64,000 nt of DNA from Selaginella moellendorffii. Its lineage: Eukaryota; Plantae; Lycopodiophyta. A program made the translations under genes and the position numbers. This document shows positions 24,147 to 46,932 of this stretch, piece by piece. Numbering within the stretch: the stretch's first letter is position 1; each line of letters starts with the position of its first letter. The stretch lies in contig NW_003314273.1 in NCBI RefSeq assembly GCF_000143415.4, positions 1,828,052 through 1,892,051 of the forward strand, in the 5' to 3' direction. The notes under the pieces were generated by a model, which did no database searches, was not told where the DNA came from, and saw nothing but the letters and a program-made list of their open reading frames with translations.

Positions 24147-24570
24147 CCTCAATCTCCACAGATCCAGCATCGAGCAGTAGTGTCTGGGCTGAGGCTTGAA
24201 TCCACAGTCGTTGCTCATTGAAACGAGAACTCGCATCCCTTGCCTGCGTGGCTGCAAGCAACCAAAGCACTCACATACGCAACTTGGTCGGGGATCATCT
24301 CACGAAAGTGGTCAATCGCTTGCGTCGGAATGACTACATGCGGAGATCACCGACATCCACGACACAACGTTCGATGGGAGAATGGTGCCAGGATGGAGTT
24401 CCAGGAGACGATGTTCCTCTCGGGCATGAGAGAGAGGATCTCCCAGATGCCCTTGTTGGGCATTCCCGCAAGGAGCGAGTTCAGCTCCATAGCTCGCACT
24501 CTGGGCTCTTGACGCCCGTGTTCCAGGTCACAAAGCTGGTGCGCGACAACGAGGCCCAAGATGCTGCCAA
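24147..24570 (-). pseudogene. PLS-PPR relic (other copies ~37950-38435, 41525-41950, 50400-50890, 63560-64000)
   Basis: MPERNIVSWNSIL, LVACSHAG and KPQPRHYCSMLDL fragments with frameshifts. Confidence 0.75.
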
Positions 24571-25478
24571 GAGCCCTGCATCCCAAGAAGTCCCGCCTAA
24601 TCCTCTGTAACAAACCCCTCCCCGCCACATCAGATTTCCCTGCCGAGTCATCCCTCCACGTGTTCTGTCTCACTTTATTCTACGGGCTTGTTATTGGCCG
24701 CTACAACTTTCAACAGTCATATCTCAAGTTCATGTCTTTTGCCTATAGATGAATGCTTACTTGAACAATGCCGCAATTGAAAACTGTCTTCTGGACGGAA
24801 ATGAACAAAGGAGACCTTCAGGTAGGCAGCTCACGTTTGTCCTGCCAGAACATTTTAAAACCCAAAGCAATAGCTGCAAGCAAAAGTTGCACAAGCTGCT
24901 GCTCTGTCTGCAATTTCGTCTGGAACTGGATCCGCCGCTGACATTTCTGCTGCTGCTGCCGCTGCCGTTGCGAGCTCCAAAAGGTTTGTGCATTTCCACG
25001 AAGCAACTCTTGTTTGTTCCTCACGACAGTGCACTAGGAAGTATATAGTTTGTTGAAATAAAGCTTGCAATACAGAGCAAATTCAAACCCAGAGCAAACA
25101 ACACAGCCCGCAACTGCCAGCTACTCCTGCTAGCTCACGAGGAATCGGCCAACCCCATGCATCAAAACATCACTCACTACAGCTGCATCATCAATCTCCT
25201 CAGCTGCACCGCACTCCCTTGTGGCCAAGGAGCTCAAGAAGGGAAACAATGCAAGCAAATTGTTTGTAGCAAAATGTAAATTAAGTTTTTCAAATCAAGA
25301 TATTTACAAGATTCAATCGAATGACCCAAACCAAAACTCTATAGGCCATTGCAAGCGTGCCACCTTTCAGATATACGTGCCAAACTGAGCTTGGTCCTAC
25401 TGATTAGCTTGAGGCCTCCGTAAAAGAATGAGTTTGTAAAAGTCCACCACCGTGATCGTGATGGAAGAAAGACGGGCT

Positions 25479-26804
25479 CTACTGCTTGGTGTCCTTAAAC
25501 CACCAGTTTGCTGGAACTCCAAGCTCTGCCTTGAGATAGTCCGATCTCTTGTTCACCAGTGCGATATCCCGGGTGCCCGAGATACTGAAGGGCTTGCTCG
25601 GCCCTTGGTAGCCATCAACCAGGTGAAGCAAGGCCTCCAAGTTGTGCAGATCGGTCAAGCCACCATCTTCCCTCAGAAACGGAGAGATGTCGCTGCTGAG
25701 CTCAAACTCGGTGCCAACATGGGTGTAGGCCCATGGGAACCTGTGGAAGATGAGCGAGATGATATCACAGCTGTCCTCGTTGACAATCACCCCTGGAACT
25801 TTGGGCACCAGGTCTGTGGCATTGCGTGTCTGGAGGACTTTGAGCCCGAGCTCGAGGCATCTGTTCTTGAAACCCCGGTTCCCAACTCGGGGTGCCGAGA
25901 ACGTGAAGACCGACACCGGGGTATTGCTCCCGGGCAGCCCAAGCTCTGTCACGTCGTAGGCGCTGAGGAGTGCAAGCGCGCCACCCAGGCTGTGGCCCGT
26001 GAACGTCATACTCAGCTGCTCGCCCTGGTAGAGCCCGACCAATCGCTTGATCTCCGAGTGGAGCTGCTGCCTCGCACTCATCCCGGCCTGATCGCCGGGG
26101 ACTGGAGACGTGTAGATGCTGAGAAATCCCGTCTCCACTTTCACGCCTTTGGTGTTGTGATCCGTGGGATCGAGCCCGGTGGGGCGGAGGAGATCCTTGA
26201 GGTTCTCGATCCACTCGAGCTGCGTCACCGTCCCGCGCCAGGCCACCACAATGTCGCGGCGTCCCAACCGTCGGATGGCCTCGTCCGACGTGGCAACCGC
26301 CACGAAGCCCATCCAGTTGGTGTCCGACGTCCACGAGTCGTCGCCGGGTTGGGCGTTGGAATTGGAGCGCTTGAAGAAGCTGGGCAAGCCCAGCTGCGAT
26401 GTTGCGTAGAGATAGGCCGTGATTTCGTATCCTGTGCTTGGGATTCCCACGGATTGGAGGAGCTCCTCCTTGGAGAACTTTGTGTCTCCACAGAATTCCG
26501 AGCCCTCGCTGTATTCGAAGCCGTCGTAGCAAGCCTGCGCGAATTCGCCGTATCGGATGATCTCCCGCCGGAGCCGCTCGTCGATGGAGGCGTTGGCGGG
26601 CGGGAGGAGCGGACTCCAGTGGCATGCATCCCGCCAGCCTGAGCTCAGCGCCAACTGCGTCTCCTCCAGCTCCACAACGCGCGCGCCATGACCATCTCCT
26701 TCAGATCTCTCCAACGTTCTTCTCTTGAATGAGAATGACAATGAATCTCCTTCTCTCTCCAACGGCCTTCTCTTGAATGACAGTGACAATGAAACTCGTT
26801 CCAT
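25479..26804 (-). CDS. Phospholipase A1, DAD1-like, copy 2
   Basis: Intact ORF, near identical to copy 1, GHSLG motif present. Confidence 0.93.
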   Translation of the reverse strand: MERVSLSLSFKRRPLEREGDSLSFSFKRRTLERSEGDGHGARVVELEETQLALSSGWRDACHWSPLLPPANASIDERLRREIIRYGEFAQACYDGFEYSEGSEFCGDTKFSKEELLQSVGIPSTGYEITAYLYATSQLGLPSFFKRSNSNAQPGDDSWTSDTNWMGFVAVATSDEAIRRLGRRDIVVAWRGTVTQLEWIENLKDLLRPTGLDPTDHNTKGVKVETGFLSIYTSPVPGDQAGMSARQQLHSEIKRLVGLYQGEQLSMTFTGHSLGGALALLSAYDVTELGLPGSNTPVSVFTFSAPRVGNRGFKNRCLELGLKVLQTRNATDLVPKVPGVIVNEDSCDIISLIFHRFPWAYTHVGTEFELSSDISPFLREDGGLTDLHNLEALLHLVDGYQGPSKPFSISGTRDIALVNKRSDYLKAELGVPANWWFKDTKQ

Positions 26805-29800
26805 GATCTCGATGCTCGCTCTGATGGGCTTGGACAATTGTTGATAAGCCTATCGATCGATCAGCTCGTCCTTGGCGAGTATGGTGTCAATGAATCAGAT
26901 GATCGCTTCGTAAAAAACTTCTCCTCTTCTTGGCTCTCCCTCCGTGTAAATTGCTGGTGGAATGCTGAGATTGTGGCAGAGGATTTATAGCAGTATCGCT
27001 TTTAAAGTTTGCCACCGGGTCAAAAGCATATACGAAATTCTCGTGTTGATCTCTTCAATTTCTTGTCGAATGGGAAGCATAATAGTCAAAGTTCAAACCA
27101 CCAGGGTCAGCCAAAGGAGGTATCGCGTCTTTGACCTGCAGACTTTCACTGAGCTTTCACTCTTGACTCTCATCCATTCAGTAAAGCAGTTGCGAGGTCG
27201 GGATCACTGTTCTCCTCACTTGGCGATCATAGGTGTAAATTGGAAGTCCTGACGCCAGATACTTGATCATCTCCTTGACAAACAGCCCAGAGTCTCAATC
27301 AAAGAAAGGCTCCCAAGAGCGGCCCATCACACTCTAGGGCCACCACACTCTGGGGCCACCACACTCTTGGAATCCTTGGCTGCTGCTGGTGATTATGGGT
27401 AGTCAACAATGAGCCTGTAGAACAAAGTGAGGTGGCACATGTGGTGCATCGTTAAGGGGCTTTGAAAGCCTCCCCCAATTTTAAAAATTAGATATACTTC
27501 TTAATATTAATATTTAATTATGTGAGTGCCTGGAATATGGAAAGGGAATACAGAAATGTGCATATCAATTAGCCCAAAAACCCTAGCTTATATACAGGAG
27601 CGAGTGGTTCGGATTGAAACCAATCCGACGGCTACTAAAATCCACTACGCTAATATTAGTATACGGCATCGTAGCTGTACACTTGGCCCTCACATCATCC
27701 CCTCCTCTCGGAATAATGGAAGGCCGTCAGGGTTCTTTTGTAGATGGGCCGGGATCTGGAGGAACGTCAGGAGGAGGCATCGGCGGATCTGTAGACGGTA
27801 TTAACTGCTCCTGATCCCTTTGTATGAAGTGTTTTAACCGCTGCACATGCACAATCTCTGGAGGATCGGCCTGCTGAACGTCATGCCGAACCTCATAAAC
27901 TTGCGGTCCAACTTGCCGCAACACCCGATACGGTCCTTTCCACTGCGCAAGGAGCCCCTTAGATAAACCACGTACTGTAAGATGGGGAAAACGGACTAAC
28001 ACCAAATCATCCACTTTGTACTCCGCAGGTGGACGATGATGGGAGTTGTAGCGCCGTTGTTGTCCCACTTGTACGCGGCCTAAATGTTCAACAGACTCTG
28101 CTCGGACAAGTGGAAGAATGCTTGTCAAATACTGATCCCATGACCTAGCATCAGGAGCTCGTGGCAATCGTGAAGGTAAACCCAGCTCTGTTGGTAATAT
28201 TGGATCATGACCATATAGAAGTTTATATGGTGAAGCACCAACAGAACTCTGCACCCCTGTGACATAGGCATACCGAAGAGACGGCAAATAACCATCCCAA
28301 TCCGAATGCTGAAAGTTCACATACTTCGCAATCATCCCTTTGAATGTCCGAACGAGCCGTTCCACCAGACCGTCTGATTGTGGATGATAAGCACTCGTAA
28401 AAGTGTGGCGTATCCCCAACCGAGATGTCAAAACATGAAATACCTCAGCCATAAATGCAGGACCATTATCCGAAAGAATCCGCTCTGGACAAGAATGCTG
28501 GAACACCACTCGATTGAGGAGGAAGTATCCAACAGCAGTTGCAGAGGCGCTAGCAAGAGCACCAACTTCCACCCAACGAGTCAAGTAGTCAGAAGCAATA
28601 ATAACATACTCATTGCCAGCAGTCGATCGTGGAAAAGGTCCCATAAGATCAAACGCCACCAACTCAAACAGACGGGAAACTGCAATTAACTCCAACCGTC
28701 CTTCCGCAGCACAAGGGGGAGTATTACGAGCTTGGCACCAAACGCAACTACGCACATACCGGATAATATCACGTCGCATCTCCGGCCAATAAAAAGACCT
28801 GCGCAGCTTCTCGGTGACACGACGGTGTCCCATATGCCCACCTAGAACAGGAGAATCATGGTAGGCATGGAGAAACCGCGGAATAAACACCAAAGGCACC
28901 ACCAACCGTAAATGATCATCAGGATCCGTCCCCACAAAATAAAAAAGGCCATCTTCAAGGCGATATTGAGAATGTAAATGCCGGAAAGGCAAGTCATCAG
29001 CAAGTGATGTAGGATTCTCAAACCCATCTCGAAGCCTTCGAATCCATGGCTCAATCTTTTGAGCCTCGCGAACCTCATCAAGAGAAGGTAGATCTTGCTT
29101 TGTGCCCTGTGGACACTGAACATCAAGGACAGCAACCGCCGACGGCACAGAATCCTCATCTAGAAAATCCACAGACGCTGGAACAACAGGTTCGTTAGAA
29201 ACATGAGAAGTGAGTGGAGAAGGAAGAGGAGCTCGAGAAAGGGCATCAGCATCAGCCATAGAACTCCCTGGGCGATGAACAACATCAAAATCATATATCT
29301 GAAGCTTCAAAGCCCATCAAGCCGTACGACCAACCAGGTTCTTCCGCTTCAATAATGAAGTAACAGCAGCATGGTCACCTTCAAGTAATGTCCGAGAACC
29401 ATGTAGATATGCATGAAGTTTCTCGAAACCCCAGACTGCTGCTAAACACTCCTTCTCCGTCGTGGAGTAGTTCATCTCCGCTAGTTGTAATGTACGGCTT
29501 ATGTATGCAATGGGATGGCGCTGACCAGGCACACTCGAGCTCTCTTGCATCAACACACCTCCAAGACCAATGTCAGAAGCATCCACGCGCAAAATAAAAG
29601 GTCGAGTGTAGTCAGGATATGCCAAAACCGGAGGAGTCGTCAATAGCTCTTTGAGATCCACGAACGCCCGCTCACAATCCGGAGACCAGATGAAAGATGA
29701 CGTTGATGACTTCAGCAACGCTCGCAATGGTGTAGTGCGATCGGAAAGATGATCCACAAAACGACCGAGATACTACACCTTACCCAAAAAGCGTTGCACA

Positions 29801-31151
29801 TCATTCACACATTTTGGAGTAGGGAACTTAAGAACAGCCACAAGTTTGTCAGGATCAACTTGCAAACCCTCACGAGAAATACGGTACCCAAGATAAGTTG
29901 TGTCCTTGGACCCAAACACGCACTTTGACCGCTTCAGCTTTAAACCAATATCACGTAGCCGATCCAACACTTTACAAACATCACGAACGTGCTCCTCTCA
30001 CGTCCCCTCCGAGTGGATCAAGACATCATTAATGAAGTCAGCAATCACTTTCGGCATATCGCAAAGAACCTCGTCCATCATCCGCTGGAAAGTTGCGGGA
30101 GCATTGTTCAAACCAAACGGCATCACCAAGAACTCGTACAAACCAAATGGTGTACGAAAAGCAGTCTTAGGAATATCTTCTTCGGCCATCGGTACTTGCC
30201 AATACCCAGAAGCAAGATCTAGCTTGGTGAACCAACGACTTCGCCCCAGACGATCTAAGAGATCAGCAGTGTGAGGAAGAGGATACACATCTGGGATCGT
30301 CATTTTGTTTAACGGGCGATAGTCGATGCAGAAACGAATACTCCCATCAGGCTTCATCACAAGATGAGGTTCACATGCCCAAGGACTCCGCGACTTCCGA
30401 ATAACACCCTTCTCCAACATTTCCTTGACGTTGGCTCGTAAAATCTTGATCTCCTTAGGTGACCGACGACGAACAGGAACCTTGATTGGACGAGCATCCC
30501 CGGTTGGAATCGGATGACGTGTGGCAATCTTGGCCCCAGACGATAGGTCAAATTCAAAGAGATCAGAATACTCCTTCATGAGCCGGTCAACTGCTGCAAC
30601 ACAAAGATCATCGGAGGGATCGGAAAAGGGAAAAGCAGAACAAGATGGAAACACAGAAGGAAAGAGTGGGGGAACAAAAGTAATGGAAGCAGATGTAAAA
30701 GTAGAGGGACGAAGAGGTATGGAAGTGAGAGGAATGGATGAAACATAAGGAAGTATGAGATAAGGGGGAGAAGCCTCAAAGTCACACTTGGCATGATTGT
30801 GTTGCAACCAATCCATACCAAGAATGAGGTCAAAAGCTTGACTCGGCACCACCCGCAACGACTGAAACTCAAGCTCGAGATCGCCCACACGCACAACCAG
30901 GTCCACCTCATCCCGTGCACATGCATGTGTACGGCCGTTGCCATAAAGAATGAAAACTAGTTCCACCGCACGACGCAAGTGTAAATGACAACGTGTGGTA
31001 ACAGGTCGAGCAATAGAAGATAAACTCGAACCTGTATCAACCAACACAGAGAGAATAATAGGAGACCTCTTGTTATAAAAACGAGCTTGGAAAGTAAACA
31101 CGGGATGAACCGATGCCGAGTGAACCCCTTGATGACACTCCCGAAAGAAAG

Positions 31152-31215
31152 ACGGAGGGGTCACTGATTTATTCGCGCAAGGTCCCTCCATTACTCGCGC
31201 GACTCCTCGTTTCCC
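31152..31215 (-). promoter_or_regulatory. Predicted -1 ribosomal frameshift signal (G GGA AAC plus H-type pseudoknot) at the gag-pol junction
   Basis: Heptamer at 31209-31215 is in the gag frame and pol is in the -1 frame; 6-nt spacer; stem 1 UCGCGCGAG/CUUGCGCGA, stem 2 AUGGAGGG/CCCUCCGU. Confidence 0.85.
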
Positions 31216-32328
31216 GGATGCATCTCGGCGTCCAGATCTTCCACTGCAACAACACCCACGGGACGTTGCTGATGCCAAGGTCTCCACCCAGGAAATGGAG
31301 GTCGCCAATCCGGAAAACGACGGCAACGCCGATAAGTATGACCAACTTCATCACACGCCCAACAGCGAACATCACGGCCACGACCACGTCCTCGCGCTTG
31401 TCCTTGGACTCGAGCAGCAGCAGCATCAACCTCCATTGGAACAGGACCATCACCCATAGGAAGGGGAGCGGAAGGATGTGCAGCGAGAAGTGGAAGAGGC
31501 GACATCTCATAATGTTGTGCCAAGCGAAGAGCATCGTCAAGGGTGGCAGGAGCAAGTGCATGCACAAGTCCAACAAGATCTTGACGAAGTGCTGGCCACA
31601 ACATTCCTAGCTTGATCCGCTCTGACATATTTGGCTCCGCACGAAGCAAAAGGCTTCGGAAACAAACGCCAAATTGCATCACTGACTCAGATGGCCCTTG
31701 GCGAAGACGATGCAATTGTTAGAAAGCATCATCACAATCATCGGCATAGCCGAAGGCGCATTTGAAGACGTCCAGGAGAACACTCCAATCCCCACGAGTG
31801 GCTGCGCTCAAACCATTGTACCACTGCAACGCCGTCCCTTGGAGACACGTGGGAAACTCACGCAAACGTCGAGCATCATCCCAAGAATGATATGTGGCAA
31901 TCACCGTGAAGTGATCGAACCAATGGTACACATCATCCCCAGGATTCCCGCGAAAGAACTCCGGCCGAACGCGAGGATTAGTACCAAGAGCAGGAGGAGT
32001 TGTACCACGTGCCGCGAACGCCGCCATCAACTGAGTTTGGTTGTTCAATTGCAAGCGCATAGCATCAAGCAATTGTACCAACTGCTGCTCTAGAGTCAAA
32101 GGAGGAGATTGCGGATCTGCCATGAAGATGAACGAAAAAGAAAGAGCAAAAGAAGAGAGATGACAAAAAGCTAGAAGGAAATGGTAGATCTAGACAACGC
32201 AAAAAGCTAGATCTAAACCAAAAGAAAGAACAAAAGAAAGGAAATGGAAAAAGCTAGATCTAAACGATGCAAAAGCTAGATCTAAACCAAAATCCCAAAT
32301 CCAAACACTCTTCAGGGACAATCAAAGG

Positions 32329-32346
32329 TGCCCTTCATCTCCACCA
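32329..32346 (-). promoter_or_regulatory. Primer-binding site, tRNA-Ala-like
   Basis: TGGTGGAGATGAAGGGCA, 1 nt from the 5' LTR; the first 11 nt are complementary to the recalled tRNA-Ala 3' end ...CAUCUCCACCA. Confidence 0.7.
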
Positions 32347-33558
32347 ATGTGAGTGCCTGGAATATGGAAAGGGAATACAGAAATGTGCATATCAATTAGC
32401 CCAAAAACCCTAGCTTATATACAGGAGCGAGTGGTCCGGATTGAAACCAATCCAACGGCTACTAAAATCCACTACGCTAATATTAGTATACGGCATCGTA
32501 GCTGTACACTTGGCCCTCACAATTATATTATTTTTATTTATATTAATTTATTGTTTGCATAAGCAAAAGTGAAATATATTAAGTTCTACCAAATAATTGT
32601 TATTCATTTAGATTAATCTTGTATTTAAACATATTTATAATCTATAACTTTCCTAAACACTTTCTAGTATATTTTTGGTTTGCTTAAGGTGGTAGTGGAT
32701 ATACCTAGAATATACTTGGATATTCTAGGATATTTACCATCTAACCATTACTCAATTACGCTTCAACCATTGTTTAACTGTAGGTACATGCATTCGATGG
32801 AGTATGTTGTGTCAGGAACAGCTGATGGAGTCGTTTGCATCAATACTACTGCTCACACTGGACAATTGGGTTTAGTACAGCAGCAAAAGTACTGGGAAGT
32901 ATCAATGTGTAACATATGAGTTTCTCATTTGACATTCCTTTACAGGGTAATGTTATAATTAAGAAAAATATTTATAATTTATAAACTTTCCTAAACATGT
33001 CTTAGTATATTCTAGTTTATTTTACCATTTAATGGTTAATATTCAATAAGATCAATCTTGTTTTTATAAATTATAAACATGTTTATAATTATAAACTTTC
33101 ATTTGATTAATTAGAAATATTAAGTAAACCTGCAATGCACAGCAAATTAGTATTTATTTTACCATCTAATTTGATATTTAATAAGATTAATTTTCATTTA
33201 TAAATTGTAATTTTTTTTATAATTATTGATCAAATGGATTATTCAATAATACTAAACAGGAATGAATTGTTTCACGTTTCTTGTCTTTTTCAATGATCTC
33301 CACCTTGCTCCATTTTAGAATGAGGTAGAGGGCTATCTCTCTTTCCTTTACTTTGAAGCTCATGGTGAATAGCTTTCTTCTCCATAGCTAGAAAAAGTAA
33401 TGAAGATCAAGCTCATTAGTGTCTAAACCCAGACACTGTTATTAGTGTTTGTAAGTCTTCATTCAAAAGTGGGATTAGGATTGTGATTATGACTTTTATC
33501 ATCATGGTCCTAAAGCTCATTCTGTGTGGGAGAGGACACACAAAAAGTCATGGAAACA

Positions 33559-33596
33559 TAGGGTTTAGGGTTTAAGGTTTAGGGTCTAAACCCTAG
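33559..33596. repeat. Short interstitial plant telomeric-like repeat (copy at 45938-45975)
   Basis: TAGGG TTTAGGG TTTAAGG TTTAGGG TC TAAACCCTAG. Confidence 0.75.
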
Positions 33597-34235
33597 ACAG
33601 TCCAAACGCTTTCCCTCTAGCTTGGGATGGAAAGTATATATGGACTTTTGAGCACTATTTGTAGGCTGACATTGAGAAATAAGTTACAAGACTAACACAC
33701 ATTTCGTCTTTGCAATGCTCATCTTAGTTTGGTTTTGATTGATTGATCCCACCAATGAGTTTTTATTTTATTTATTTATTTATTTCCTTTTTTTATCAGT
33801 TTCTGATGATAGAAACCGAAATGGAAGTAATTCTTATCACTACTTGCATTCCAGACCTTGCAACCTAAATCTTTTAGAACAAACTTTAAGGCTAGTACAT
33901 GCAAGAGTAATTACAAGCAATAGAAGAGAAATCAGGTCTTCAAACCATTTGAATCATAGTCTTTCAATAGATTGAGCATTTAAGATTCTCCTGGATATAA
34001 GATTGTAAAGAAAAATGTGAAATAAACTGATCTTGACTGGAAATCTTTGTTTGAGTTTTAAAGCATAATAATCTATTGCTCAAACGACTATTTTAGATAT
34101 GATAATGTTTTAATTATCCATGTTGGATTATTTTTATAACAAATATATGAAAAAACATTTGAAAGAAAACCAAGATATGAGTTTTTGAACCAAATTTACA
34201 AAGAAACATATAAATATACCCTTTGTGATTTTTTT

Positions 34236-34553
34236 GGTTTGCTTAAGCAAACCTATAGAGGGTAGTGGATAGACCTAGAATATGCTTGAATATTATAGGA
34301 TATTCTACCATCTAATGGTTGTTATTCATTTAGATTAATCTTGTATTTATAATTTATAAACTTTTTAAAACCCTTTCTAGTATATTCTTTTTATCCTATC
34401 ATCTAATGGTTGATATGTAGATTAATCTTTTGTTTATAAATTACAAACATGTTTATAATTATAAACTTATTTGATTAATTAGATTAATAAGTAAGAATAA
34501 CACTACTATTAAGCAAACCAAGCATTGTTACATACAATGTGTAGCAATTTATT
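34236..34553 (+). mobile_element. ~315-bp non-autonomous element with Helitron2/Helentron(HINE)-like ends
   Basis: 5' palindrome GGTTTGCTTAAGCAAACC after a T run; 3' subterminal IR TTAAGCAAACC (34509-34519), then an 11-bp stem-loop and Ts; empty poly-T site at ~60270. Confidence 0.7.
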
Positions 34554-36385
34554 TTAAGATTCAATTTCAAACTCATGTTATTGATGTGTTTATTTCAAGG
34601 GTTTATTTCTAAGTTATTTTTGAATTAAGCTTTTATGAATGTTTTCTTTGTGTTTATAAAAGTGTTTATATTGCACATTTTGATTAAACGAGAAGAACTT
34701 AGATGCTTACTAGCAGCAGCTAGCAGCTCATACAATACCTTGCCTAATGCATTGTAATCCAAAAAATGAAAATACCTCTAATGACTGTTGTAAATTCCAA
34801 TCTAAGTTGTGTTTTCTTACAAAGTCCCAACAGTGTTTCCGTTTGACACCTTTGTGTGAGCCCATTTGCCACACCACCATGCTGCGTGCGTGTTCTCTTC
34901 GACCAGTTCTCCTCCCAGCTTTCAGGTAAAGTCTAAAGCAGAAGGATGACTATAGACGTGAGAAACTTACTTGATCAAGTGTTCTCTTGCACTGAAGTAG
35001 TAGGCTCCTCATTATCACTATAGGAAATTTTTTTCAATGATGCTTGACGGGACCTATAATTAAGCATCTATGGTTGGAATAAGTGGATTATGAACTCGAC
35101 AAGTCATGTATCGCCACAAACGGTGCATGAAGGTCGCTAGAAACCAGTGGCTATTCAATTTTAAAATGGATCTGGGATTTCATGGATGTTGTTTTGATTC
35201 TTGTGATACCAACAAGCGGCAGCAACTTCACACAAGCAGAAACAACACTGCATCGCCCGCTAGACACCGATGTCGTATACGTGGTGAGCCAGGAGCTTGG
35301 CCATGGAAGATGTTTCTGTCATCTTATTGTGCTTGAGGAAGCGGGCCTTGAACTCATCATCATCAATGGGCGTTGCAGCCAGCCTTGCTGCAACCTGTTT
35401 TGGTGACAATCCGCGCTTGAGAAGGAAGCCCCGCCCCAATCTTGACATCCTCGCCATGTAACAGCCGCGCCTCCCTGGCTCAAAATCCATTGGCGTCACG
35501 TAGGACACCGTCGACCCCGGGTCGCCGAGCATGCCCAAGTAGTTGCTCGCTTCAAGCTGCATCTGGAGGGAGGGAGGCTTGCCCTGCAGCTGCCGCACTA
35601 TCTATAAACCATGCATGAGCAACAAATTTTTTTTTAAAAAATCAGAACGCTGAAGGCTCACTCACATGATCCGCTATTCGGAAGAGGTTCGACAGGAAGC
35701 TGTGAATAGCCGAGCACAGCCGCGCGTCTAACACGGCCATGTAGACGTTCTCCATGTAAGGTAAGGGCACACAGTAATAAGAGAAGCAAGCCTTCCGCCG
35801 TCGCCCAGATCTAGCAGGAGCTGCTCCAGCTCCACTGCACTTACAGTCCCTGTTGTTTCATTTCTTTTTGTCAATATTTTCATCTGGCTGCGAGGGAAAC
35901 TTCCATCGCTCGAGCGACTGATGAGTTGCAGAGCGGGATTTCATCAAGCAAGAAATCCAGCTTTGAGGACCTCACGTTTACAGCCTTTGGGAATTGAGCT
36001 TTATACCGTGCATATGGGTTTCTTTCCTCCAGGCCCTAAAGCAGCAAACTAAACTCGCATTACGTATTTCTTCACATACCACGCTTGGATTGTCTCGAAC
36101 AGAGCTCCACCCTCCACGGAGAAGGCGAACTGTGCCTGAAGGCAGAGATGACCCTCCGCAACTCGAGCGTGGCATCCACGGCTTCTCTCAAGCCCGGCGG
36201 CACGTCTGCAAGGTTATCCACTCCCTCCATAAGTTGGCCAACCCTGAAAAGGGACTGACGCCACGACCAAGTGCCCAGATTTCAGGTTCTTTCCAATGTG
36301 GAAGCTGTTTCCAAGAGCCATGGTTGCTCGAGAGCATTTTCCTGAGCGAAAGCCAGGAAGTTCCGGAAGCTTGCGGAGATGGTGC

Positions 36386-37316
36386 ACTCTTGCCGGGAGG
36401 CCCAATCCGTGGTTGCCAAGACCCTGGCGTGCGAGCTTTCACAACATGCTGGCTCCACGATTTGGCGATTGAATTTGGGAGGGGTTCCCTCCATACTGAA
36501 AAGTTTTTCTTCCAAGAATCTGGAAGCGAAGAGCCACGTCGATCTGATTGGAACTTTTTGCGGGATCCAATGTGTGAGCAGCAGCAGCAGCACAGTGGCG
36601 ATTGATGCGAGCGTCCACTCTGTTTCCATTTCTCTTGGAAGTTGAAAAAAGAATGAAACTTTGCAGACGGCCACATTGGTCTTCGCGAATCGCCGCTGCT
36701 CGTCTCAGTCTATGGCGAGGCCGAGGCCGCTGGATCGTTCTGTGCCCACTGCATTCATTTCTTCCAGTTCCTGGTGTGCGACGTGCTAAGATCAATGCCC
36801 GTTGGTTTGATGGCTCCCAGCTCTGGGCAAGGTGAGAGCTTCGATGCCACCCGCGTACCTGGTTGATCCTGAAGTCCCTTGAACCGTCAACCTTTGGCTC
36901 ACCTGGAGAAAGATATAGGAATGTGTTACTTACCGGGAAAGAACAACCAAGCCATAGCCACGAAGACTACGAACAAAAGAAGCAAAGAACTGAGAGAACA
37001 AGGAACGAAAGCTACTCACCACATCGAGCGGGACGAAGATGAACTGCGAGACGACCTAGGGGAGAAAGCCCGCAGCTCCATTCGCGATGGCGGCGGCGGC
37101 GGTGTCTGGAAAGTTGAGCTTGGAAGTGAGGTTGAGCCGCCATCTTGGTCGCTTCGAGAGTTGTCAAGAACAGCACTCAACTGGAAACAGTGCCGGCAAT
37201 CACGGTCCAAATCCCCGGTAGAGTCCTCTCACTCCATTGCTAAGAATCGATCTGAGCTTTCATATTGCTCGCCTCATTCTCGTCTTGATCGGGTAGAGCG
37301 CCGCCGACAAGCCCGA
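36386..37316. pseudogene. Collinear deletion-mosaic of the exostosin, SET and carrier genes (source 5560-8520), copy 1
   Basis: Successive matches to 5562-5597, 5626-5676, 5737-5875, 6113-6215, 6578-6641 and 8045-8519, in the same order and orientation. Confidence 0.9.
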
Positions 37317-39216
37317 TATGTTCTCTCGAGATTCTACTCACTGTCACAGTCGCACGACACCACCACTGGCGCCATCACGAGCCATGGTGACAGACAGGGA
37401 ACGACGAGGTCCTGCCAGAAAAGATCACCCATTAACGGAGGAAAGTGGAGAGAAATTTGGATCACATACTTGTGTTTTTTGTTTGCTCATTCCTGGCCTC
37501 CACGCAAAGCCAAATATATATGTCGATCCAGCTTAGGCACGCGGAGTGAAGTTCCACCGATTGGCACACCGAAGATGCTACGTTTGTCGTGTCCCAACCT
37601 CGGACGATCGTTCCAGCCTCGAGAAAGGAGCAAAAGCAATACAGACTGTTGCTCGAATATCTCTAACCAGCCCTAGAAACTCAACACAGTTAATCTAATA
37701 ATAAAATAATAAAATTGTGTTTTCGCCCATTCCAGCCTTGACAATTGCTTGTTTCACCCAGAACAATCCAGATCGGCAAATGTAGACATGAGATTTTATC
37801 AGAAGCTTGCGATCCTGTACCTACACGCGACCCAAAGGAAAAGATGTTCACATTCAGGATCTTACAATCTGAAGCAATTGCTAATCAAGTTGGCACAGCC
37901 TTTTCCGCAACAAGAATGCTTCCCAACACTCCGTAGTCCGACGAGCTCAAACAATGCCGACTCCTTTGCGAGCCGGCGAGCAGCGCCATCCGGGAGCTCT
38001 CTCGGCTGGCTCAATCTCCACAGATCCAGCATCGAGCAGTAGTGTCTGGGCTGAGGCTTGAATCCACAGTCGTTGCTCATCGAAACGAGAACTCGCGTCC
38101 CTTGCCTGCGTGGCTGCAAGCAACCAAAGCACTCACATACGCAACTTGGTCGGGGATCATCTCACGAAAGTGGTCAATCGCTTGCGTCGGAATGGCTACA
38201 CGCGGAAATCACCGACGTCCACGACACAACGTTCGATGGGAGAACGGCGCCAGGATGGAGTTCCAGGAGACGATGTCCCTCTCGGGCATGAGAGCGAGGA
38301 TCTCCCAGATGCCCTTGTTGGGCATTCCCGCAAGGAGCGAGTTCAGCTCCATAGCTCGCACTCGGGCTCTTGACGCCCGTGTTCCAGGTCACAAAGCTGG
38401 CGCGCGACAACGAGGCCCAAGATGCTGCCAAGAGCCCGAGGTCTCCTCCATAAGCTGCTTCTTAGTTTTTAGTTTTAAGAAAATGGAGGCCTCGGGCTTA
38501 CTTGAACAATGCCGAAGAAGTACGATTGAAAACTGTCTTCTGGACGGAAATGAACAAAGGAGACTTTCAGGTAGGCAGCTCACGTTTGTCCTGCCAGCAC
38601 ATTTTAAAACTCGCAGCAAAAGCTGCACAAGCTGCTGTTCTGTCTGCAATTTCGTCTGGAACTGGATCCGCCGCTGACATCTCTGCTGCTGCTGCCGTTG
38701 CGAGCTCCAAAAGGTTTGTGCATTTCCACGAAGCAACTCTTGTTTGTTCCTCACGCCATTGCACTAGGAAGTATTGAAATAAGGCTTGCAATACAGAGCA
38801 AATTCAAAACCAAAGCAAACAACACAGTCCGCAACTGCCAGATACTCCTGCTATCATCGAGGAATCGGCCAACCCCATGCATCCAAACATCGCTCACTAC
38901 AGCTACATCATCGATCTCCTCAGCTGCACCGCACACCCTTGTGGCCAAGGAGCTCAAGAAGGGAAACAATGCAAGCAAATGGTTTGTGTCATGGAATAGC
39001 AAAATGTAAAGTAAGTTTTCAAATCAAGATATTTACAAGATTCGGTCGAATGAACTTCAAGGAAGCTTCTCGAACCAAAACTCTATAAGCCATTGCAAGC
39101 GTGCCACCTTTCAGATATACGTGCCAAACAGAGCTTACTGATCAGCGTGAGGCCTCCGTAAAAGAATGAGTTTGTAAAAGTCCACCACCGTGATCGTGAT
39201 GGAAGAAAGACGGACT

Positions 39217-40542
39217 CTACTGCTTGGTGTCCTTAAACCACCAGTTTCCTGGAACTCCAAGCTCTGCCTTGAGATAGTCCGATCTCTTGTTCACCAGTGC
39301 GATATCCCGGGTGCCCGAGACACTGAAGGGCTTGCTCGGCCCTTGGTAGCCATCAACCAGGTGAAGCAAGGCCTCCAAGTTGTGCAGATCGGTCAAGCCA
39401 CCATCTTCCCTCAGAAACGGAGAGATGTCGCTGCTGAGCTCAAACTCGGTGCCAACATGGGTGTAGGCCCATGGGAACCTGTGGAAGATGAGCGAGATGA
39501 TATCACAGCTGTCCTCGTTGACAATCACCCCTGGAACTTTGGGCACCAGGTCTGCGGCATTGCGTGTCTGGAGGACTTTGAGCCCGAGCTCGAGGCACCT
39601 GTTCTTGAAACCCCGGTTCCCAACTCGGGGTGCCGAGAACGTGAAGACGGACACCGGGGTATTGCTCCCGGGCAGCCCAAGCTCTGTCACGTCGTAGGCG
39701 CTGAGGAGTGCAAGCGCGCCACCCAGGCTGTGGCCCGTGAACGTCATACTCAGCTGCTCGCCCTGGTAGAGCCCGACCAATCGCTTGATCTCCGAGTGGA
39801 GCTGCTGCCTCGCGCTCATCCCGGCCTGATCGCCGGGGACTGGAGACGTGTAGATGCTGAGAAATCCGGTCTCCACTTTCACGCCTTTGGTGTTGTGATC
39901 CGTGGGGTCGAGCCCGGTGGGGCGGAGGAGATCCTTGAGGTTCTCGATCCACTCGAGTTGCGTCACCGTCCCGCGCCAGGCCACCACAATGTCGCGGCGT
40001 CCCAACCGTCGGATGGCCTCGTCCGACGTGGCAACCGCCACGAAGCCCATCCAGTTGGTGTCCGACGTCCACGAGTCGTCGCCGGGTTGGGCGTTGGAAT
40101 TGGAGCGCTTGAAGAAGCTGGGCAAGCCCAGCTGCGATGTTGCGTAGAGATAGGCCGTGATTTCGTATCCCGTGCTTGGGAGTCCCACGGATTGGAGGAG
40201 CTCCTCCTTAGAGAACTTTGTGTCTCCACAGAATTCCGAGCCCTCGCTGTATTCGAAGCCGTCGTAGCAAGCCTGGGCGAATTCGCCGTATCGGATGATC
40301 TCCCGCCGGAGCCGCTCGTCGATGGAGGCGTTGGCGGGCGGGAGGAGCGGACTCCAGTGGCATGCATCCCGCCAGCCTGAGCTCAGCGCCAACTGCGTCT
40401 CCTCCAGCTCCACAACGCGCGCGCCATGACCATCTCCTTCAGATCTCTCCAACGTTCTTCTCTTGAATGAGAATGACAACGAATCTCCTTCTCTCTCCAA
40501 CGTCCTTCTCTTGAATGACAGTGACAATGAAACTCGTTCCAT
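39217..40542 (-). CDS. Phospholipase A1, DAD1-like, copy 3
   Basis: Intact ORF with GHSLG, Asp and His motifs. Confidence 0.93.
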   Translation of the reverse strand: MERVSLSLSFKRRTLEREGDSLSFSFKRRTLERSEGDGHGARVVELEETQLALSSGWRDACHWSPLLPPANASIDERLRREIIRYGEFAQACYDGFEYSEGSEFCGDTKFSKEELLQSVGLPSTGYEITAYLYATSQLGLPSFFKRSNSNAQPGDDSWTSDTNWMGFVAVATSDEAIRRLGRRDIVVAWRGTVTQLEWIENLKDLLRPTGLDPTDHNTKGVKVETGFLSIYTSPVPGDQAGMSARQQLHSEIKRLVGLYQGEQLSMTFTGHSLGGALALLSAYDVTELGLPGSNTPVSVFTFSAPRVGNRGFKNRCLELGLKVLQTRNAADLVPKVPGVIVNEDSCDIISLIFHRFPWAYTHVGTEFELSSDISPFLREDGGLTDLHNLEALLHLVDGYQGPSKPFSVSGTRDIALVNKRSDYLKAELGVPGNWWFKDTKQ

Positions 40543-42856
40543 GATCTCGATGCTCGCTCTGATGGGCTTGGACAATTGTTGATACGCCTATCGATCGATC
40601 AGCTCGTCCTTGACGAGTATGGTGTCAATGAATCAGATGATCGCTTCCTTCTCCCCTTGTTGTTTCTCCCTTCGTGTAGATTGCTGGTGGAATGCTGAGA
40701 TTGCGGCAGAGGATTTATAGCAGTATCGCTTTCGAAGTTTGCCACCGGGTCAAAAGCATATACGAAATTCTCGCGTTGATCTCTTCAATTTCTTCTCGAA
40801 TGGGAAACATAATAGTCAAAGTTCAAACCACTAGGGTCAACTATACACAAGGAGGTATCGCGTCTTTGACCAGCGGACTTTCACTGAAAAGCAACAAGTT
40901 GAGAGGTCGGGATCAGTGTTCTCCTCCTTTTCACCTGGTGATCAAAGGTTTAGATTGGAAGTCCTGATGCCAAGTCTCCTTGACGAACTGCCCAGAGTCT
41001 CAATCAAGGAAAGGCTCCCAAGAGCGGCGCCATCACACTCTGGGGCCACCACACTCTTGGAATCCCTGGTTGCTGCTGGCGATTGGGCACATGTGGACAA
41101 TGAGATGGACACAGATGGATCCGACCTGGCAGGAAGAATGGATGCAAGGGCAAAAGAAGTGGTGGGGAAGAGGATTGGCTTGGGAATGGTGCAACAAGCA
41201 ATGATCAAGATCTAATCACGGTGAGGGTTTTGACTCAGCCCGGGCTTATGCCCATTTTAGAACCGTTACAACGTTTCTAATATTTACTGGTTTGCTTAAA
41301 ATGTAATTAGATATACTTATTAATATTAATATTTAATTAGATTAATCTTGTATTTATAATAATTTATGGTTTGCTTAAGCAAAAGTAAAATATATTTAAT
41401 TCTACCAAATAATTGTTATTCATTTAGATTAATCTTGCATTTATAATTTCCAAACATGTTTATAATTTATAACTTTCCTAAACTCTTTATAGTTTATTTT
41501 TGGTTTGGTTAGGGATATACCACCCCTCAATCTCCACAGATCCAGCATCGAGCAGTAGTGTCTGGGCTGAGGCTTGAATCCACAGTCGTTGCTCATTGAA
41601 ACGAGAACTCGCATCCCTTGCCTGCGTGGCTGCAAGCAACCAAAGCACTCACATACGCAACTTGGTCGGGGATCATCTCACGAAAGTGGTCAATCGCTTG
41701 CGTCGGAATGACTACATGCGGAGATCACCGACATCCACGACACAACGTTCGATGGGAGAATGGTGCCAGGATGGAGTTCCAGGAGACGATGTTCCTCTCG
41801 GGCATGAGAGAGAGGATCTCCCAGATGCCCTTGTTGGGCATTCCCGCAAGGAGCGAGTTCAGCTCCATAGCTCGCACTCTGGGCTCTTGACGCCCGTGTT
41901 CCAGGTCACAAAGCTGGTGCGCGACAACGAGGCCCAAGATGCTGCCAAGAGCCCTGCATCCCAAGAAGTCCCGCCTAATCCTTTGTAACAAACCCCTCCC
42001 CGCCACATCAGATTTCCCTGCCGAGTCATCCCTCCACGTGTTCTGTCTCACTTTATTCTACGGGCTTGTTATTGGCCGCTACAACTTTCAACAGTCATAT
42101 CTCAAGTTCATGTCTTTTGCCTATAGATGAATGCTTACTTGAACAATGCCGCAATTGAAAACTGTCTTCTGGACGGAAATGAACAAAGGAGACCTTCAGG
42201 TAGGCAGCTCACGTTTGTCCTGCCAGAACATTTTAAAACTCAAAGCAATAGCTGCAAGCAAAAGTTGCACAAGCTGCTGCTCTGTCTGCAATTTCGTCTG
42301 GAACTGGATCCGCCGCTGACATTTCTGCTGCTGCTGCCGCTGCCGTTGCGAGCTCCAAAAGGTTTGTGCATTTCCACGAAGCAACTCTTGTTTGTTCCTC
42401 ACGACAGTGCACTAGGAAGTATATAGTTTGTTGAAATAAAGCTTGCAATACAGAGCAAATTCAAACCCAGAGCAAACAACACAGCCCGCAACTGCCAGCT
42501 ACTCCTGCTAGCTCACGAGGAATCGGCCAACCCCATGCATCAAAACATCACTCACTACAGCTGCATCATCAATCTCCTCAGCTGCACCGCACTCCCTTGT
42601 GGCCAAGGAGCTCAAGAAGGGAAACAATGCAAGCAAATTGTTTGTAGCAAAATGTAAACTAAATTTTTCAAATCAAGATATTTACAAGATTCAATCGAAT
42701 GACCCAAACCAAAACTCTATAGGCCATTGCAAGCGTGCCACCTTTCAGATATACGTGCCAAACTGAGCTTGGTCCTACTGATTAGCTTGAGGCCTCCGTA
42801 AAAGAATGAGTTTGTAAAAGTCCACCACCGTGATCGTGATGGAAGAAAGACAGGCT

Positions 42857-44182
42857 CTACTGCTTGGTGTCCTTAAACCACCAGTTTGCTGGAACTCCAA
42901 GCTCTGCCTTGAGATAGTCGGATCTCTTGTTCACCAGTGCGATATCCCGGGTGCCCGAGATACTGAAGGGCTTGCTCGGCCCTTGGTAGCCATCAACCAG
43001 GTGAAGCAAGGCCTCCAAGTTGTGCAGATCGGTCAAGCCACCATCTTCCCTCAGAAACGGAGAGATGTCGCTGCTGAGCTCAAACTCGGTGCCAACATGG
43101 GTGTAGGCCCATGGGAACCTGTGGAAGATGAGCGAGATGATATCACAGCTGTCCTCGTTGACAATCACCCCTGGAACTTTGGGCACCAGGTCTGTGGCAT
43201 TGCGTGTCTGGAGGACTTTGAGCCCGAGCTCGAGGCATCTGTTCTTGAAACCCCGGTTCCCAACTCGGGGTGCCGAGAACGTGAAGACCGACACCGGGGT
43301 ATTGCTCCCGGGCAGCCCAAGCTCTGTCACGTCGTAGGCGCTGAGGAGTGCAAGCGCGCCACCCAGGCTGTGGCCCGTGAACGTCATACTCAGCTGCTCG
43401 CCCTGGTAGAGCCCGACCAATCGCTTGATCTCCGAGTGGAGCTGCTGCCTCGCGCTCATCCCGGCCTGATCGCCGGGGACTGGAGACGTGTAGATGCTGA
43501 GAAATCCCGTCTCCACTTTCACGCCTTTGGTGTTGTGATCCGTGGGATCGAGCCCGGTGGGGCGGAGGAGATCCTTGAGGTTCTCGATCCACTCGAGCTG
43601 CGTCACCGTCCCGCGCCAGGCCACCACAATGTCGCGGCGTCCCAACCGTCGGATGGCCTCGTCCGACGTGGCAACCGCCACGAAGCCCATCCAGTTGGTG
43701 TCCGCCGTCCACGAGTCGTCGCCGGGTTGGGCGTTGGAATTGGAGCGCTTGAAGAAGCTGGGCAAGCCCAGCTGCGATGTTGCGTAGAGATAGGCCGTTA
43801 TTTCGTATCCCGTGCTTGGGAGTCCCACGGATTGGAGGAGCTCCTCCTTGGAGAACTTTGTGTCTCCACAGAATTCCGAGCCCTCGCTGTATTCGAAGCC
43901 GTCGTAGCAAGCCTGGGCGAATTCGCCGTATCGGATGATCTCCCGCCGGAGCCGCTCGTCGATGGAGGCGTTGGCGGGCGGGAGGAGCGGACTCCAGTGG
44001 CATGCATCCCGCCAGCCTGAGCTCAGCGCCAACTGCGTCTCCTCCAGCTCCACAACGCGCGCGCCATGACCATCTCCTTCAGATCTCTCCAACGTTCTTC
44101 TCTGGAATGAGAATGACAACGAATCTCCTTCTCTCTCCAACGTCCTTCTCTTGAATGACAGTGACAATGAAACTCGTTCCAT
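42857..44182 (-). CDS. Phospholipase A1, DAD1-like, copy 4
   Basis: Intact ORF with GHSLG, Asp and His motifs. Confidence 0.93.
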   Translation of the reverse strand: MERVSLSLSFKRRTLEREGDSLSFSFQRRTLERSEGDGHGARVVELEETQLALSSGWRDACHWSPLLPPANASIDERLRREIIRYGEFAQACYDGFEYSEGSEFCGDTKFSKEELLQSVGLPSTGYEITAYLYATSQLGLPSFFKRSNSNAQPGDDSWTADTNWMGFVAVATSDEAIRRLGRRDIVVAWRGTVTQLEWIENLKDLLRPTGLDPTDHNTKGVKVETGFLSIYTSPVPGDQAGMSARQQLHSEIKRLVGLYQGEQLSMTFTGHSLGGALALLSAYDVTELGLPGSNTPVSVFTFSAPRVGNRGFKNRCLELGLKVLQTRNATDLVPKVPGVIVNEDSCDIISLIFHRFPWAYTHVGTEFELSSDISPFLREDGGLTDLHNLEALLHLVDGYQGPSKPFSISGTRDIALVNKRSDYLKAELGVPANWWFKDTKQ

Positions 44183-46614
44183 GATCTCGATGCTCGCTCT
44201 GATGGGCTTGGACAATTGTTGATAAGCCTATCGATCGATCAGCTCGTCCTTGGCGAGTATGGTGTCAATGAATCAGATGATCGCTTCGTAAAAAACTTCT
44301 CCTCTTCTTGGCTCTCCCTCCGTGTAAATTGCTGGTGGAATGCTGAGATTGTGGCAGAGGATTTATAGCAGTATCGCTTTCAAAGTTTGCCACCGGGTCA
44401 AAAGCATATACGAAATTCTCGCGTTGATCTCTTCAATTTCTTCTCGAATGGGAAGCATAATAGTCAAAGTTCAAACCACCAGGGTCAGCCAAAGGAGGTA
44501 TCGCGTCTTTGACCTGCAGACTTTCACTGAGCTTTCACTCTTGACTCTCATCCGTTCAGTAAAGCAGTTGCGAGGTCGGGATCACTGTTCTCCTCACTTG
44601 GCGATCATAGTTGTAAATTGGAAGTCCTGACGCCAGATACTTGATCATCTCCTTGACAAACAGCCCAGAGTCTCAATCAAAGAAAGGCTCCCAAGAGCGG
44701 CCCATCACACTCTAGGGCCACCACACTCTGGGGCCACCACACTCTTGGAATCCTTGGCTGCTGCTGGTGATTATGGGTAGTCAACAATGAGCCTGTAGAA
44801 CAAAGTGAGGTGGCACATGTGGTGCATCGTTAAGGGGCTTTGACCCAGTAAGCCTCCCCCAATTTTAAAAATTAGATATACTTCTTAATATTAATATTTA
44901 ATTATATTATTTTTATTTATATTAATTTATTGTTTGCATAAGCAAAAGTGAAATATATTAAGTTCTACCAAATAATTGTTATTTATTTAGATTAATCTTG
45001 TATTTAAACATATTTATAATCTATAACTTTCCTAAACACTTTCTAGTATATTTTTGGTTTGCTTAAGGTGGTAGTGGATATACCTAGAATATACTTGGAT
45101 ATTCTAGGATATTTACCATCTAACCATTACTCAATTACGCTTCAACCATTGTTTAACTGTAGGTACATGCATTCGATGGAGTATGTTGTGTCAGGAACAG
45201 CTGATGGAGTCGTTTGCATCAATACTACTGCTCACACTGGACAATTGGGTTTAGTACAGCAGCAAAAGTACTGGGAAGTATCAATGTGTAACATATGAGT
45301 TTCTCATTTGACATTCCTTTACAGGGTAATGTTATAATTAAGAAAAATATTTATAATTTATAAACTTTCCTAAACATGTCTTAGTATATTCTAGTTTATT
45401 TTACCATTTAATGGTTAATATTCAATAAGATCAATCTTGTTTTTATAAATTATAAACATGTTTATAATTATAAACTTTCATTTGATTAATTAGAAATATT
45501 AAGTAAACCTGCAATGCACAGCAAATTAGTATTTATTTTACCATCTAATTTGATATTTAATAAGATTAATTTTCATTTATAAATTGTAATTTTTTTTATA
45601 ATTATTGATCAAATGGATTATTCAATAATACTAAACAGGAATGAATTGTTTCACGTTTCTTGTCTTTTTCAATGATCTCCACCTTGCTCCATTTTAGAAT
45701 GAGGTAGAGGGCTATCTCTCTTTCCTTTACTTTGAAGCTCATGGTGAATAGCTTTCTTCTCCATAGCTAGAAAAAGTAATGAAGATCAAGCTCATTAGTG
45801 TCTAAACCCAGACACTGTTATTAGTGTTTGTAAGTCTTCATTCAAAAGTGGGATTAGGATTGTGATTATGACTTTTATCATCATGGTCCTAAAGCTCATT
45901 CTGTGTGGGAGAGGACACACAAAAAGTCATGGAAACATAGGGTTTAGGGTTTAAGGTTTAGGGTCTAAACCCTAGACAGTCCAAACGCTTTCCCTCTAGC
46001 TTGGGATGGAAAGTATATATGGACTTTTGAGCACTATTTGTAGGCTGACATTGAGAAATAAGTTACAAGACTAACACACATTTCGTCTTTGCAATGCTCA
46101 TCTTAGTTTGGTTTTGATTGATTGATCCCACCAATGAGTTTTTATTTTATTTATTTATTTATTTCCTTTTTTTATCAGTTTCTGATGATAGAAACCGAAA
46201 TGGAAGTAATTCTTATCACTACTTGCATTCCAGACCTTGCAACCTAAATCTTTTAGAACAAACTTTAAGGCTAGTACATGCAAGAGTAATTACAAGCAAT
46301 AGAAGAGAAATCAGGTCTTCAAACCATTTGAATCATAGTCTTTCAATAGATTGAGCATTTAAGATTCTCCTGGATATAAGATTGTAAAGAAAAATGTGAA
46401 ATAAACTGATCTTGACTGGAAATCTTTGTTTGAGTTTTAAAGCATAATAATCTATTGCTCAAACGACTATTTTAGATATGATAATGTTTTAATTATCCAT
46501 GTTGGATTATTTTTATAACAAATATATGAAAAAACATTTGAAAGAAAACCAAGATATGAGTTTTTGAACCAAATTTACAAAGAAACATATAAATATAACC
46601 TTTGTGATTTTTTT

Positions 46615-46932
46615 GGTTTGCTTAAGCAAACCTATAGAGGGTAGTGGATAGACCTAGAATATGCTTGAATATTATAGGATATTCTACCATCTAATGGTTG
46701 TTATTCATTTAGATTAATCTTGTATTTATAATTTATAAACTTTTTAAAACCCTTTCTAGTATATTCTTTTTATCCTATCATCTAATGGTTGATATGTAGA
46801 TTAATCTTTTGTTTATAAATTACAAACATGTTTATAATTATAAACTTATTTGATTAATTAGATTAATAAGTAAGAATAACACTACTATTAAGCAAACTAA
46901 GCATTGTTACATACAATGTGTAGCAATTTATT
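46615..46932 (+). mobile_element. Duplicate of the HINE-like element at 34236
   Basis: Same termini and same flanks, within the segmental duplication. Confidence 0.7.

Follow-up and report, generated by a model that had tools for sequence, protein, structure and literature searches.

Within a stretch of 64,000 nucleotides of the Selaginella moellendorffii genome (the window), a segment of 0.9 kb resembles parts of three neighbouring genes that lie about 30 kb away, and this segment, here called the digest, recurs in the long units of a tandem gene array. How did pieces of three genes come to stand side by side in the spacer of an unrelated gene family, and does the arrangement do anything? 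We found that the digest is an unprocessed (DNA-level) pseudogene relic, and we consider it likely that a single local duplication at the DNA level, followed by decay through deletions, produced it and that it was then carried along as the array grew.

The genes that the digest resembles form a live locus in the left part of the window:

5542-8521: source segment of the digest, spanning the GT47, SET/MYND and carrier genes
4450-5889, minus strand: GT47 exostosin gene (Pfam Exostosin_GT47, E = 2e-62)
6056-7242, plus strand: SET/MYND gene, with Pfam SET and zf-MYND in exon 1
~7406-8700, minus strand: mitochondrial carrier gene (Pfam Mito_carr, E = 1e-17)

These identities were assigned with Pfam exon by exon, leaving the SET and carrier exons unjoined, and the SET and zf-MYND signals are both weak on exon 1 alone. 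A PPR gene of 707 residues lies to the left of the GT47 gene. The window belongs to one haplotype, in which exact matches of its PPR and lipase proteins place it at about GL377577.1:1,828,052-1,892,051 in the same orientation; in the second haplotype of S. moellendorffii (GL377580.1), the PPR-GT47-SET-carrier genes are found at 626-631 kb with 97.8% identity to the window and are followed, as in the window, by a lipase array, which there extends from ~642 kb to beyond 692 kb. The NCBI model of the carrier (365 residues) starts at 9452 and includes an additional upstream exon (window 9129-9452), while the haplotype-2 model (356 residues) starts further in. Since the carrier-like reading frame starts only near 8700, this upstream exon may be an annotation artefact.

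In a global alignment, 36365-37318 follows 5542-8521 in the same order and on the same strand. The 878 aligned bases contain 78 substitutions (91.1% identity), the alignment has 24 deletions and 9 insertions, and ~68% of the source length is missing. The copies of the digest in the window and the parts of the first copy are as follows:

36365-37318: digest copy 1, in unit U1, a collinear, deletion-eroded copy of 5542-8521
48765-49688: digest copy 2, in unit U2, with junctions as in copy 1
61942-62857: digest copy 3, in the older unit U3, with junctions as in copy 1
36365-36639, minus strand: GT47 5' fragment, starting with the second ATG (MAKLAS...) and ending near codon 115 of the called protein
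36646-36664: promoter island of 19 bp, a remnant of the GT47/SET bidirectional promoter (source 5916-5934)
36668-36840, plus strand: SET/MYND exon 1 in two pieces (source 6118-6239 and 6578-6640)
36841-37318, minus strand: carrier fragment (source 8045-8521), comprising parts of two exons and the intervening intron

When 36386-37316 was compared with the window by BLAST, collinear plus/plus blocks were obtained at 5561-5872, 6118-6239, 6578-6641 and 8041-8519, together with full-length copies at 48786-49686 (99%) and 61964-62855 (92%); more sensitive settings gave no match within the window beyond these source blocks and the three copies. A preliminary description of this DNA had proposed that three neighbouring genes are compressed into a 0.9-kb collinear digest in each full unit, and BLAST, alignment and exon-wise Pfam all bear this out. 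The junctions that it had seen recurring at 48786 and 61964 belong to the copies at 48765-49688 and 61942-62857, respectively. Its count of roughly eight fragments in the original order is a fair one: the global alignment has five blocks of at least 50 bp (5561-5675, 5727-5872, 6118-6239, 6578-6640 and 8045-8521), or ~14 blocks if each gap of at least 9 bp is allowed to split them. The match of the 19-bp promoter island stands at z = 5 against shuffles, and past either end of the digest the homology is not significant when compared with shuffles.

None of the three gene fragments is whole. The GT47 fragment breaks off near codon 115 and carries frameshifts and deletions of 51, 10 and 9 bp, SET has lost its ATG, with the two exon 1 pieces abutting at 36787/36788, and the carrier is reduced to ~480 bp; many of the gaps in the digest have lengths that are not multiples of three. 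The carrier intron (~36906-36995) is retained with its GT and AG intact and has gained an insertion of 37 bp. Given that both splice sites are still present, the copy was made from DNA, as had been proposed from the kept intron boundaries.

The repeating unit that carries the digest belongs to a tandem array of class-3 lipase (phospholipase A1-Igamma-like) genes, in which the digest occupies the long spacer:

39220-40575 and, further, at 21840, 25479, 42860 and 56790, minus strand: five of the six intact class-3 lipase ORFs
51532-52863, plus strand: sixth intact lipase ORF, inverted
21104-27521 and 38516-44905: lipase gene blocks of the full units
27520-32521: Gypsy element, present in unit 1 only, with 175-bp LTRs that are 98.9% identical
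32521-38498 (U1), 44900-50950 (U2) and 58900 to the window end (U3, older): long spacer B

The six intact lipase ORFs of the window are 97-98% identical to each other, and a window lipase ORF shows 98% identity to an S. moellendorffii phospholipase A1-Igamma1-like protein; the lipase cluster (P0001) comprises 20 member sequences. Two lipase genes and the 6-kb spacer B make up a full unit of 12.4 kb. From left to right, the spacer comprises AT-rich sequence containing Helitron-like relics, the pseudogene of an orphan gene (P0125), the digest, an unmatched stretch and a 430-bp segment. There is also a short unit of 3.6 kb, which is without 32707-38009 and has its junction at 24136/24148. This junction cuts an AT-rich element that is uninterrupted both in the long units and in an independent member of its family at 34236. 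The short unit thus arose by deletion from a long one, whose spacer represents the ancestral state, and the converse history, in which the spacer was inserted into a short lipase unit, was rejected because the short unit truncates an element that is continuous in the long ones.

In haplotype 2, the array (GL377580.1 642-699 kb; L001, L002, L009 and L011) holds at least 10 lipase ORFs in the order lipase-B-3 lipases-B-2 lipases-B-3 lipases-B, so that the grouping of lipases differs between the haplotypes (2+2 in the window versus 1+3+2+3). The digest stands at the same place in every readable long unit of both haplotypes. At least three haplotype-2 units contain it complete, a fourth copy there is cut ~40 bp in by an assembly gap at GL377580.1 693,725-693,825, another stretch of Ns being at 692,229-692,503, and across the two haplotypes there are at least seven full-length copies.

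Several other elements were observed in and around the array. A second Gypsy copy (11656-16992) lies in the opposite orientation with ~82% identity to the copy at 27520-32521; in haplotype 2 it is reduced to fragments matching 11993-12874 and 16517-16948, and in the window it contains a long low-complexity ORF (14536-15468, with Gly-Leu and Ser-Pro-Arg-Thr runs) that has internal tandem repeats at 14661-15253. Two fragments of Copia-type reverse transcriptase (20376-20780 and 55294-56092) are weakly alike (57%). The AT-rich element at 34236-34553 is 318 bp long and starts with a perfect 18-nt palindrome. It occurs in U1, U2 and the haplotype-2 spacers but not in U3, and was therefore inserted after the separation of U3.

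To the right of the digest, the spacer contains the following:

37319-38009: right flank, unmatched in the source, in Pfam and in the dispersed loci described below
38010-38437, minus strand: 430-bp segment found in every lipase unit, short or long
~38100-38330, minus strand: pseudogene shard of a PLS-type PPR gene, within the 430-bp segment

Searches of Pfam and of the fetched loci with 37319-38009 and with 34.6-35.1 kb gave no match. We take the shard to be of the PLS type from its motifs ...RDIVSWNS... and ...ACSHAG..., and it is unrelated to the neighbouring PPR gene of 707 residues. Flanking gene shards, one PPR and one of no assigned kind, had been noted earlier: the first is this fragment, and the second is the P0125 pseudogene on the left side, where the features are:

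35115-36260, minus strand: P0125 pseudogene (XP_024544859-like), nearly full-length and intron-bearing
36255-36405, plus strand: junction piece, made up of ~90-110 bp of no matched origin and the first ~40 bp of the GT47 fragment
L005:6338-9313, L006:8583-11323, L007:8139-11416 and 14907-15699, and L008:8240-11462: dispersed ~3-kb repeat, 86-96% identical overall

The P0125 pseudogene of the spacer has kept its ATG and carries frameshifts and deletions in every unit, more of them in U3. Its decay is of the same style as that of the digest, and in U1 no deletion exceeds ~30 bp. Within it, an ORF of 112 residues (35263-35598, minus strand) has a single match among 1.84 billion representative proteins, namely P0125 (308 residues), an uncharacterised S. 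moellendorffii protein, with 86% identity over the C-terminal 116 residues (E = 3e-54); no Pfam, PDB or ESM Atlas match was found for this ORF. Intact P0125 genes reside in the dispersed ~3-kb repeat, once on GL377625.1 (L005) and at three places on GL377565.1 (L006-L008). The gene in these repeats (P0125-P0128) has four exons, encodes 308 residues and is apparently intact; identity is 97-99% among its copies and ~88% between them and the spacer pseudogenes, and outside their own cluster no relatives were found among the 1.84 billion representatives. The 5' boundary of the repeat starts TCACGTAAG, and LTR elements abut it.

Each dispersed P0125 repeat also contains a piece of 125 bp (for example, L005 6623-6748) that matches 36255-36405, including the left junction of the digest. 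Within the GT47 part of this junction piece, 19 nt match the live gene exactly, while the SET part, the carrier part and most of the GT47 part of the digest are absent from all four dispersed loci. The dispersed repeats have the piece ~1.25 kb upstream of P0125 and in inverted orientation to it; in the spacer it borders directly on the pseudogene. Since the junction is common to the spacer and the dispersed repeat, the two share ancestry, and the dispersed repeat may either descend from the lipase spacer or have exchanged sequence with it. The P0125 tree consists of two clean clades and, being unrooted without an outgroup, does not separate donor from recipient. That the ~110 bp to the left of the digest are diverged GT47 coding sequence was considered and found no support in any frame.

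The order of events was read from five copies of the digest (U1, U2, U3 and two haplotype-2 units). All five have 18 deletions and 6 small insertions in common, among them the large losses of 338 bp, 1404 bp and ~245 bp, the last of which is complex and takes in both start codons along with the GT47/SET bidirectional promoter; a gap of ~51 bp is likewise common to all copies, and its position as placed by the aligner varies among them. The presence of the large junctions in U1, U2, U3 and the two haplotype-2 units indicates that the digest was essentially finished before the unit was amplified. With the source as the outgroup, every private difference inside the digest proves to be a deletion: U2 has lost 28 bp, U3 has lost 29 and 10 bp, and U1/U2 have lost 3 bp. 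A further private deletion of 12 bp lies in the left flank of U2. Erosion therefore continued in single copies after amplification. Overall, the digest has lost ~2.0 kb and gained ~60 bp, and its gaps range in size without a break between 1 and 1404 bp. The deletion ends show 0-3 bp of microhomology, most joints having 0-1 bp, and no GT..AG or CT..AC was found at the ends of the digest deletions examined.

The aligned bases of the digest differ from the source by ~9%, those of U1 and U3 from each other by 3-4%, and those of U1 from U2 or from the haplotype-2 units by ~1% or less. Before amplification, indel events and substitutions stood at about 24 : 56. Substitutions at codon positions 1, 2 and 3 number 24:14:24, and the carrier intron and the exons show about the same divergence, a pattern that looks neutral, as would be expected of a copy that was never under selection. 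The U1-U3 identity of 96-98% in the digest is the same in the GC-rich flanks on both sides, so that the digest shows no excess conservation between units relative to these flanks; the AT-rich part diverges faster.

Taken together, the contiguous source, the preserved order and strand, the intron and intergenic remnants, the neutral substitutions and the later private deletions favour a local duplication, for which we propose the following course. A contiguous segment of at least 3 kb, running from the interior of the GT47 gene through the SET gene into the carrier gene, would have been duplicated into the adjacent lipase spacer, its left end coming to lie beside a copy of the orphan gene P0125. 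With GT47 and carrier truncated, this copy would have been dead from the outset and would then have lost about two thirds of its length, in three large stretches (~245, 338 and 1404 bp) and some 15 small ones, through the usual deletion-biased decay of plant pseudogenes; the joints with little or no microhomology are such as illegitimate recombination might leave. Unequal crossing-over would subsequently have amplified the 12.4-kb unit, placing the finished junctions in every long unit of both haplotypes, after which each copy would have lost further bases independently.

The original duplicate may have been longer than the digest now reveals, for a second, scrambled relic is found closer to the live locus:

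17604-18449, minus strand: inverted copies of source 8735-9224, with 73-89% identity

In this relic, a piece of the lipase unit interrupts the pieces of the carrier 5' part, and a 78-bp piece of the P0125 3' end follows. Because it keeps source 8735-9224, which lies beyond 8521, it suggests that the original duplicate reached at least 9224 and that its descendants lost different parts. The surrounding patch at the proximal edge of the array (17384-19630) consists of 75%-identical copies of the lipase-unit start and the inverted 8735-9224 pieces and contains an internal duplication (17097-17453 versus 19267-19629). An inverted copy of the whole patch is located at GL377580.1 696.7-698.2 kb, at the far end of the stretch read.

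The preliminary description had named two possible origins, a Helitron- or Pack-type capture and an old local duplication eroded by serial deletions. Local duplication with serial deletions fits all the tests run, and capture gained no direct support from them. If capture were the origin, a Helitron, a Pack-type TIR element or the ~3-kb P0125 repeat would have taken up the three-gene segment together with the P0125 and PPR pieces, landed ~30 kb away and then been amplified by the array, a course of events that we regard as unlikely. The spacer does mix fragments of at least three unlinked origins, as gene-capturing transposons produce, and four of its five pieces are on the minus strand. The ends that such transposons should leave are missing, however. 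The GC-rich part of the spacer contains no inverted repeats, and none bracket the digest, the spacer or the whole unit, the sole palindromes in the spacer being AT-rich relics at 32.9-34.5 kb. Target site duplications of MULEs are 9-10 bp long, and a direct repeat flanking the digest as a target site duplication was not found. Gene-fragment-carrying DNA transposons (GingerRoot and MULEs) are documented in Selaginella lepidophylla, where GingerRoot has TIRs of 100-150 bp and a target site duplication of 6 bp (PMC6839031); neither such TIRs nor such a duplication is present around the digest.

Helitrons start with 5'-TC, end in a 3' hairpin followed by CTRR and insert between A and T. A scan of 32.0-38.7 kb on both strands for a GC-rich hairpin followed by CTRR-T found no Helitron end at the digest; the single hairpin+CTRR match in this interval lies inside the P0125 pseudogene. 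The spacer-specific segment starts with TAGAA and ends with GCTGG rather than TC...CTRR, and the short unit, being a deletion, is not an empty site. The AT-rich Helitron-like family, defined by the palindrome GGTTTGCTTAAGCAAACC and two end motifs, has no match between 34.6 and 38.5 kb, and all matches to its motifs lie to the left of the P0125 pseudogene (left of 34.6 kb). A link to a mobile sequence is the junction piece 36255-36405, which occurs in all four dispersed P0125 repeats, so that a part of the composite did move. When these unlinked sites were checked for Helitron cargo, the 125-bp piece and the P0125 gene proved to be dispersed, but the digest was absent from L005-L008, where only ~40 bp of the GT47 fragment accompany them and the piece is inverted at a distance of 1.25 kb from P0125 instead of adjacent to it. 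The preliminary description had been ready to give up capture for a mosaic that exists only in this array and has no transposon ends; such ends are indeed lacking, whereas the left-junction piece of 125 bp occurs outside the array.

This dispersed piece also allows a different reading, to which we give only a small chance: the composite of P0125 gene and digest might be, or have been, the cargo of an uncharacterised TIR-less mobile element, the ~3-kb P0125 repeat itself, which would have arisen in the lipase spacer or passed through it and taken the GT47 junction with it when spreading to other scaffolds. If this were true, a dispersed orphan gene could be traced to this spacer, and the digest would mark how such elements acquire host DNA.

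It is similarly doubtful that the digest was assembled in one step, as a patchwork of filler DNA at a double-strand break or through template switching (of the MMBIR/FoSTeS type) along the neighbouring locus. Many joints in a short stretch and the high ratio of indels to substitutions before amplification (about 24:56) would suit a patchwork, and the nearby relic at 17.6-18.45 kb is truly scrambled, with its lipase-unit piece in the middle. In the digest itself, on the other hand, gap sizes run continuously from the smallest to the largest, most joints have hardly any microhomology, and deletions of this kind occurred again later in individual copies. The adjacent P0125 pseudogene, which is of similar age and free of large deletions in U1, might seem to set the digest apart, but three large deletions in 3 kb versus none in 1.2 kb is no significant difference. 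A spliced read-through retrocopy was rejected, given the kept carrier intron, the lack of GT..AG deletion ends and the lack of an A-run at either end.

That the digest copies form a regulatory locus, transcribed for instance by read-through from the minus-strand lipase ~1.9 kb upstream and acting on SET and carrier through small or antisense RNA, would fit any origin but appears very improbable. In its favour, identical stretches of 21-51 nt are still shared with SET exon 1 and with the carrier exons by U1, U2 and a haplotype-2 copy, the longest reaching 43-51 nt, and there are at least seven full-length copies in the two haplotypes. Against it, all copies are direct repeats and so give no hairpin RNA, the NCBI annotation of these units contains no genes other than lipases in either haplotype, GT47 has essentially no 21-mer in common with the copies, hardly any such matches survive in the old copy U3, and the digest is conserved no better than its flanks. 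No peak of 24-nt small RNAs exists in S. moellendorffii, and earlier work found CHH methylation to be missing in adult aerial tissue (PMC5569507, the latter as cited there). An siRNA role of the digest thus has weak priors, and, judged from its sequence, the digest would be an ordinary genomic relic with no sign of function.

As a locally duplicated and decayed relic, the digest is an object of a well-known kind, and this instance is unremarkable beyond its decay series and its value for the provenance of the P0125 repeat; nothing points to a new mechanism or function. It does show, cleanly and on a small scale, how deletion bias erodes a pseudogene in a compact plant genome, with the parent adjacent as the outgroup and five dated copies, and the left junction that it has in common with the P0125 repeat is of some minor use as a marker of the origin of that repeat. 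It also carries a caution, in that one decayed local duplicate in a tandem array can mimic a family of gene-capturing transposons and, once multiplied by the array, inflates the apparent count of gene fragments.

Compared with known systems, the digest resembles most unprocessed pseudogene fragments of plants in its intron and intergenic remnants, its truncation, frameshifts and lost start codons, and its parents next door. Unlike the usual fragments of this kind, it comprises three adjacent genes on both strands, compressed to one third, and it has been multiplied as a passenger of an array, so that it resembles a repeat family. Like the cargo of Helitrons, Pack-MULEs and GingerRoot, it presents intron-bearing fragments of host genes side by side and far from their parents; it differs from such cargo in that it has no defining ends, that its copy number comes from array amplification, and that its three fragments derive from one contiguous locus and keep their own order. 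With filler DNA and template-switch patchworks it has in common a short mosaic of nearby sequences with little microhomology, but the digest strictly keeps the order and strand of its source, and single copies underwent comparable deletions later. The lipase array itself, with long and short units, haplotype-variable number and order, high identity and a hitch-hiking spacer, behaves like other tandem gene arrays formed by unequal crossing-over and has nothing unusual about it: the array is the vehicle, not the finding.
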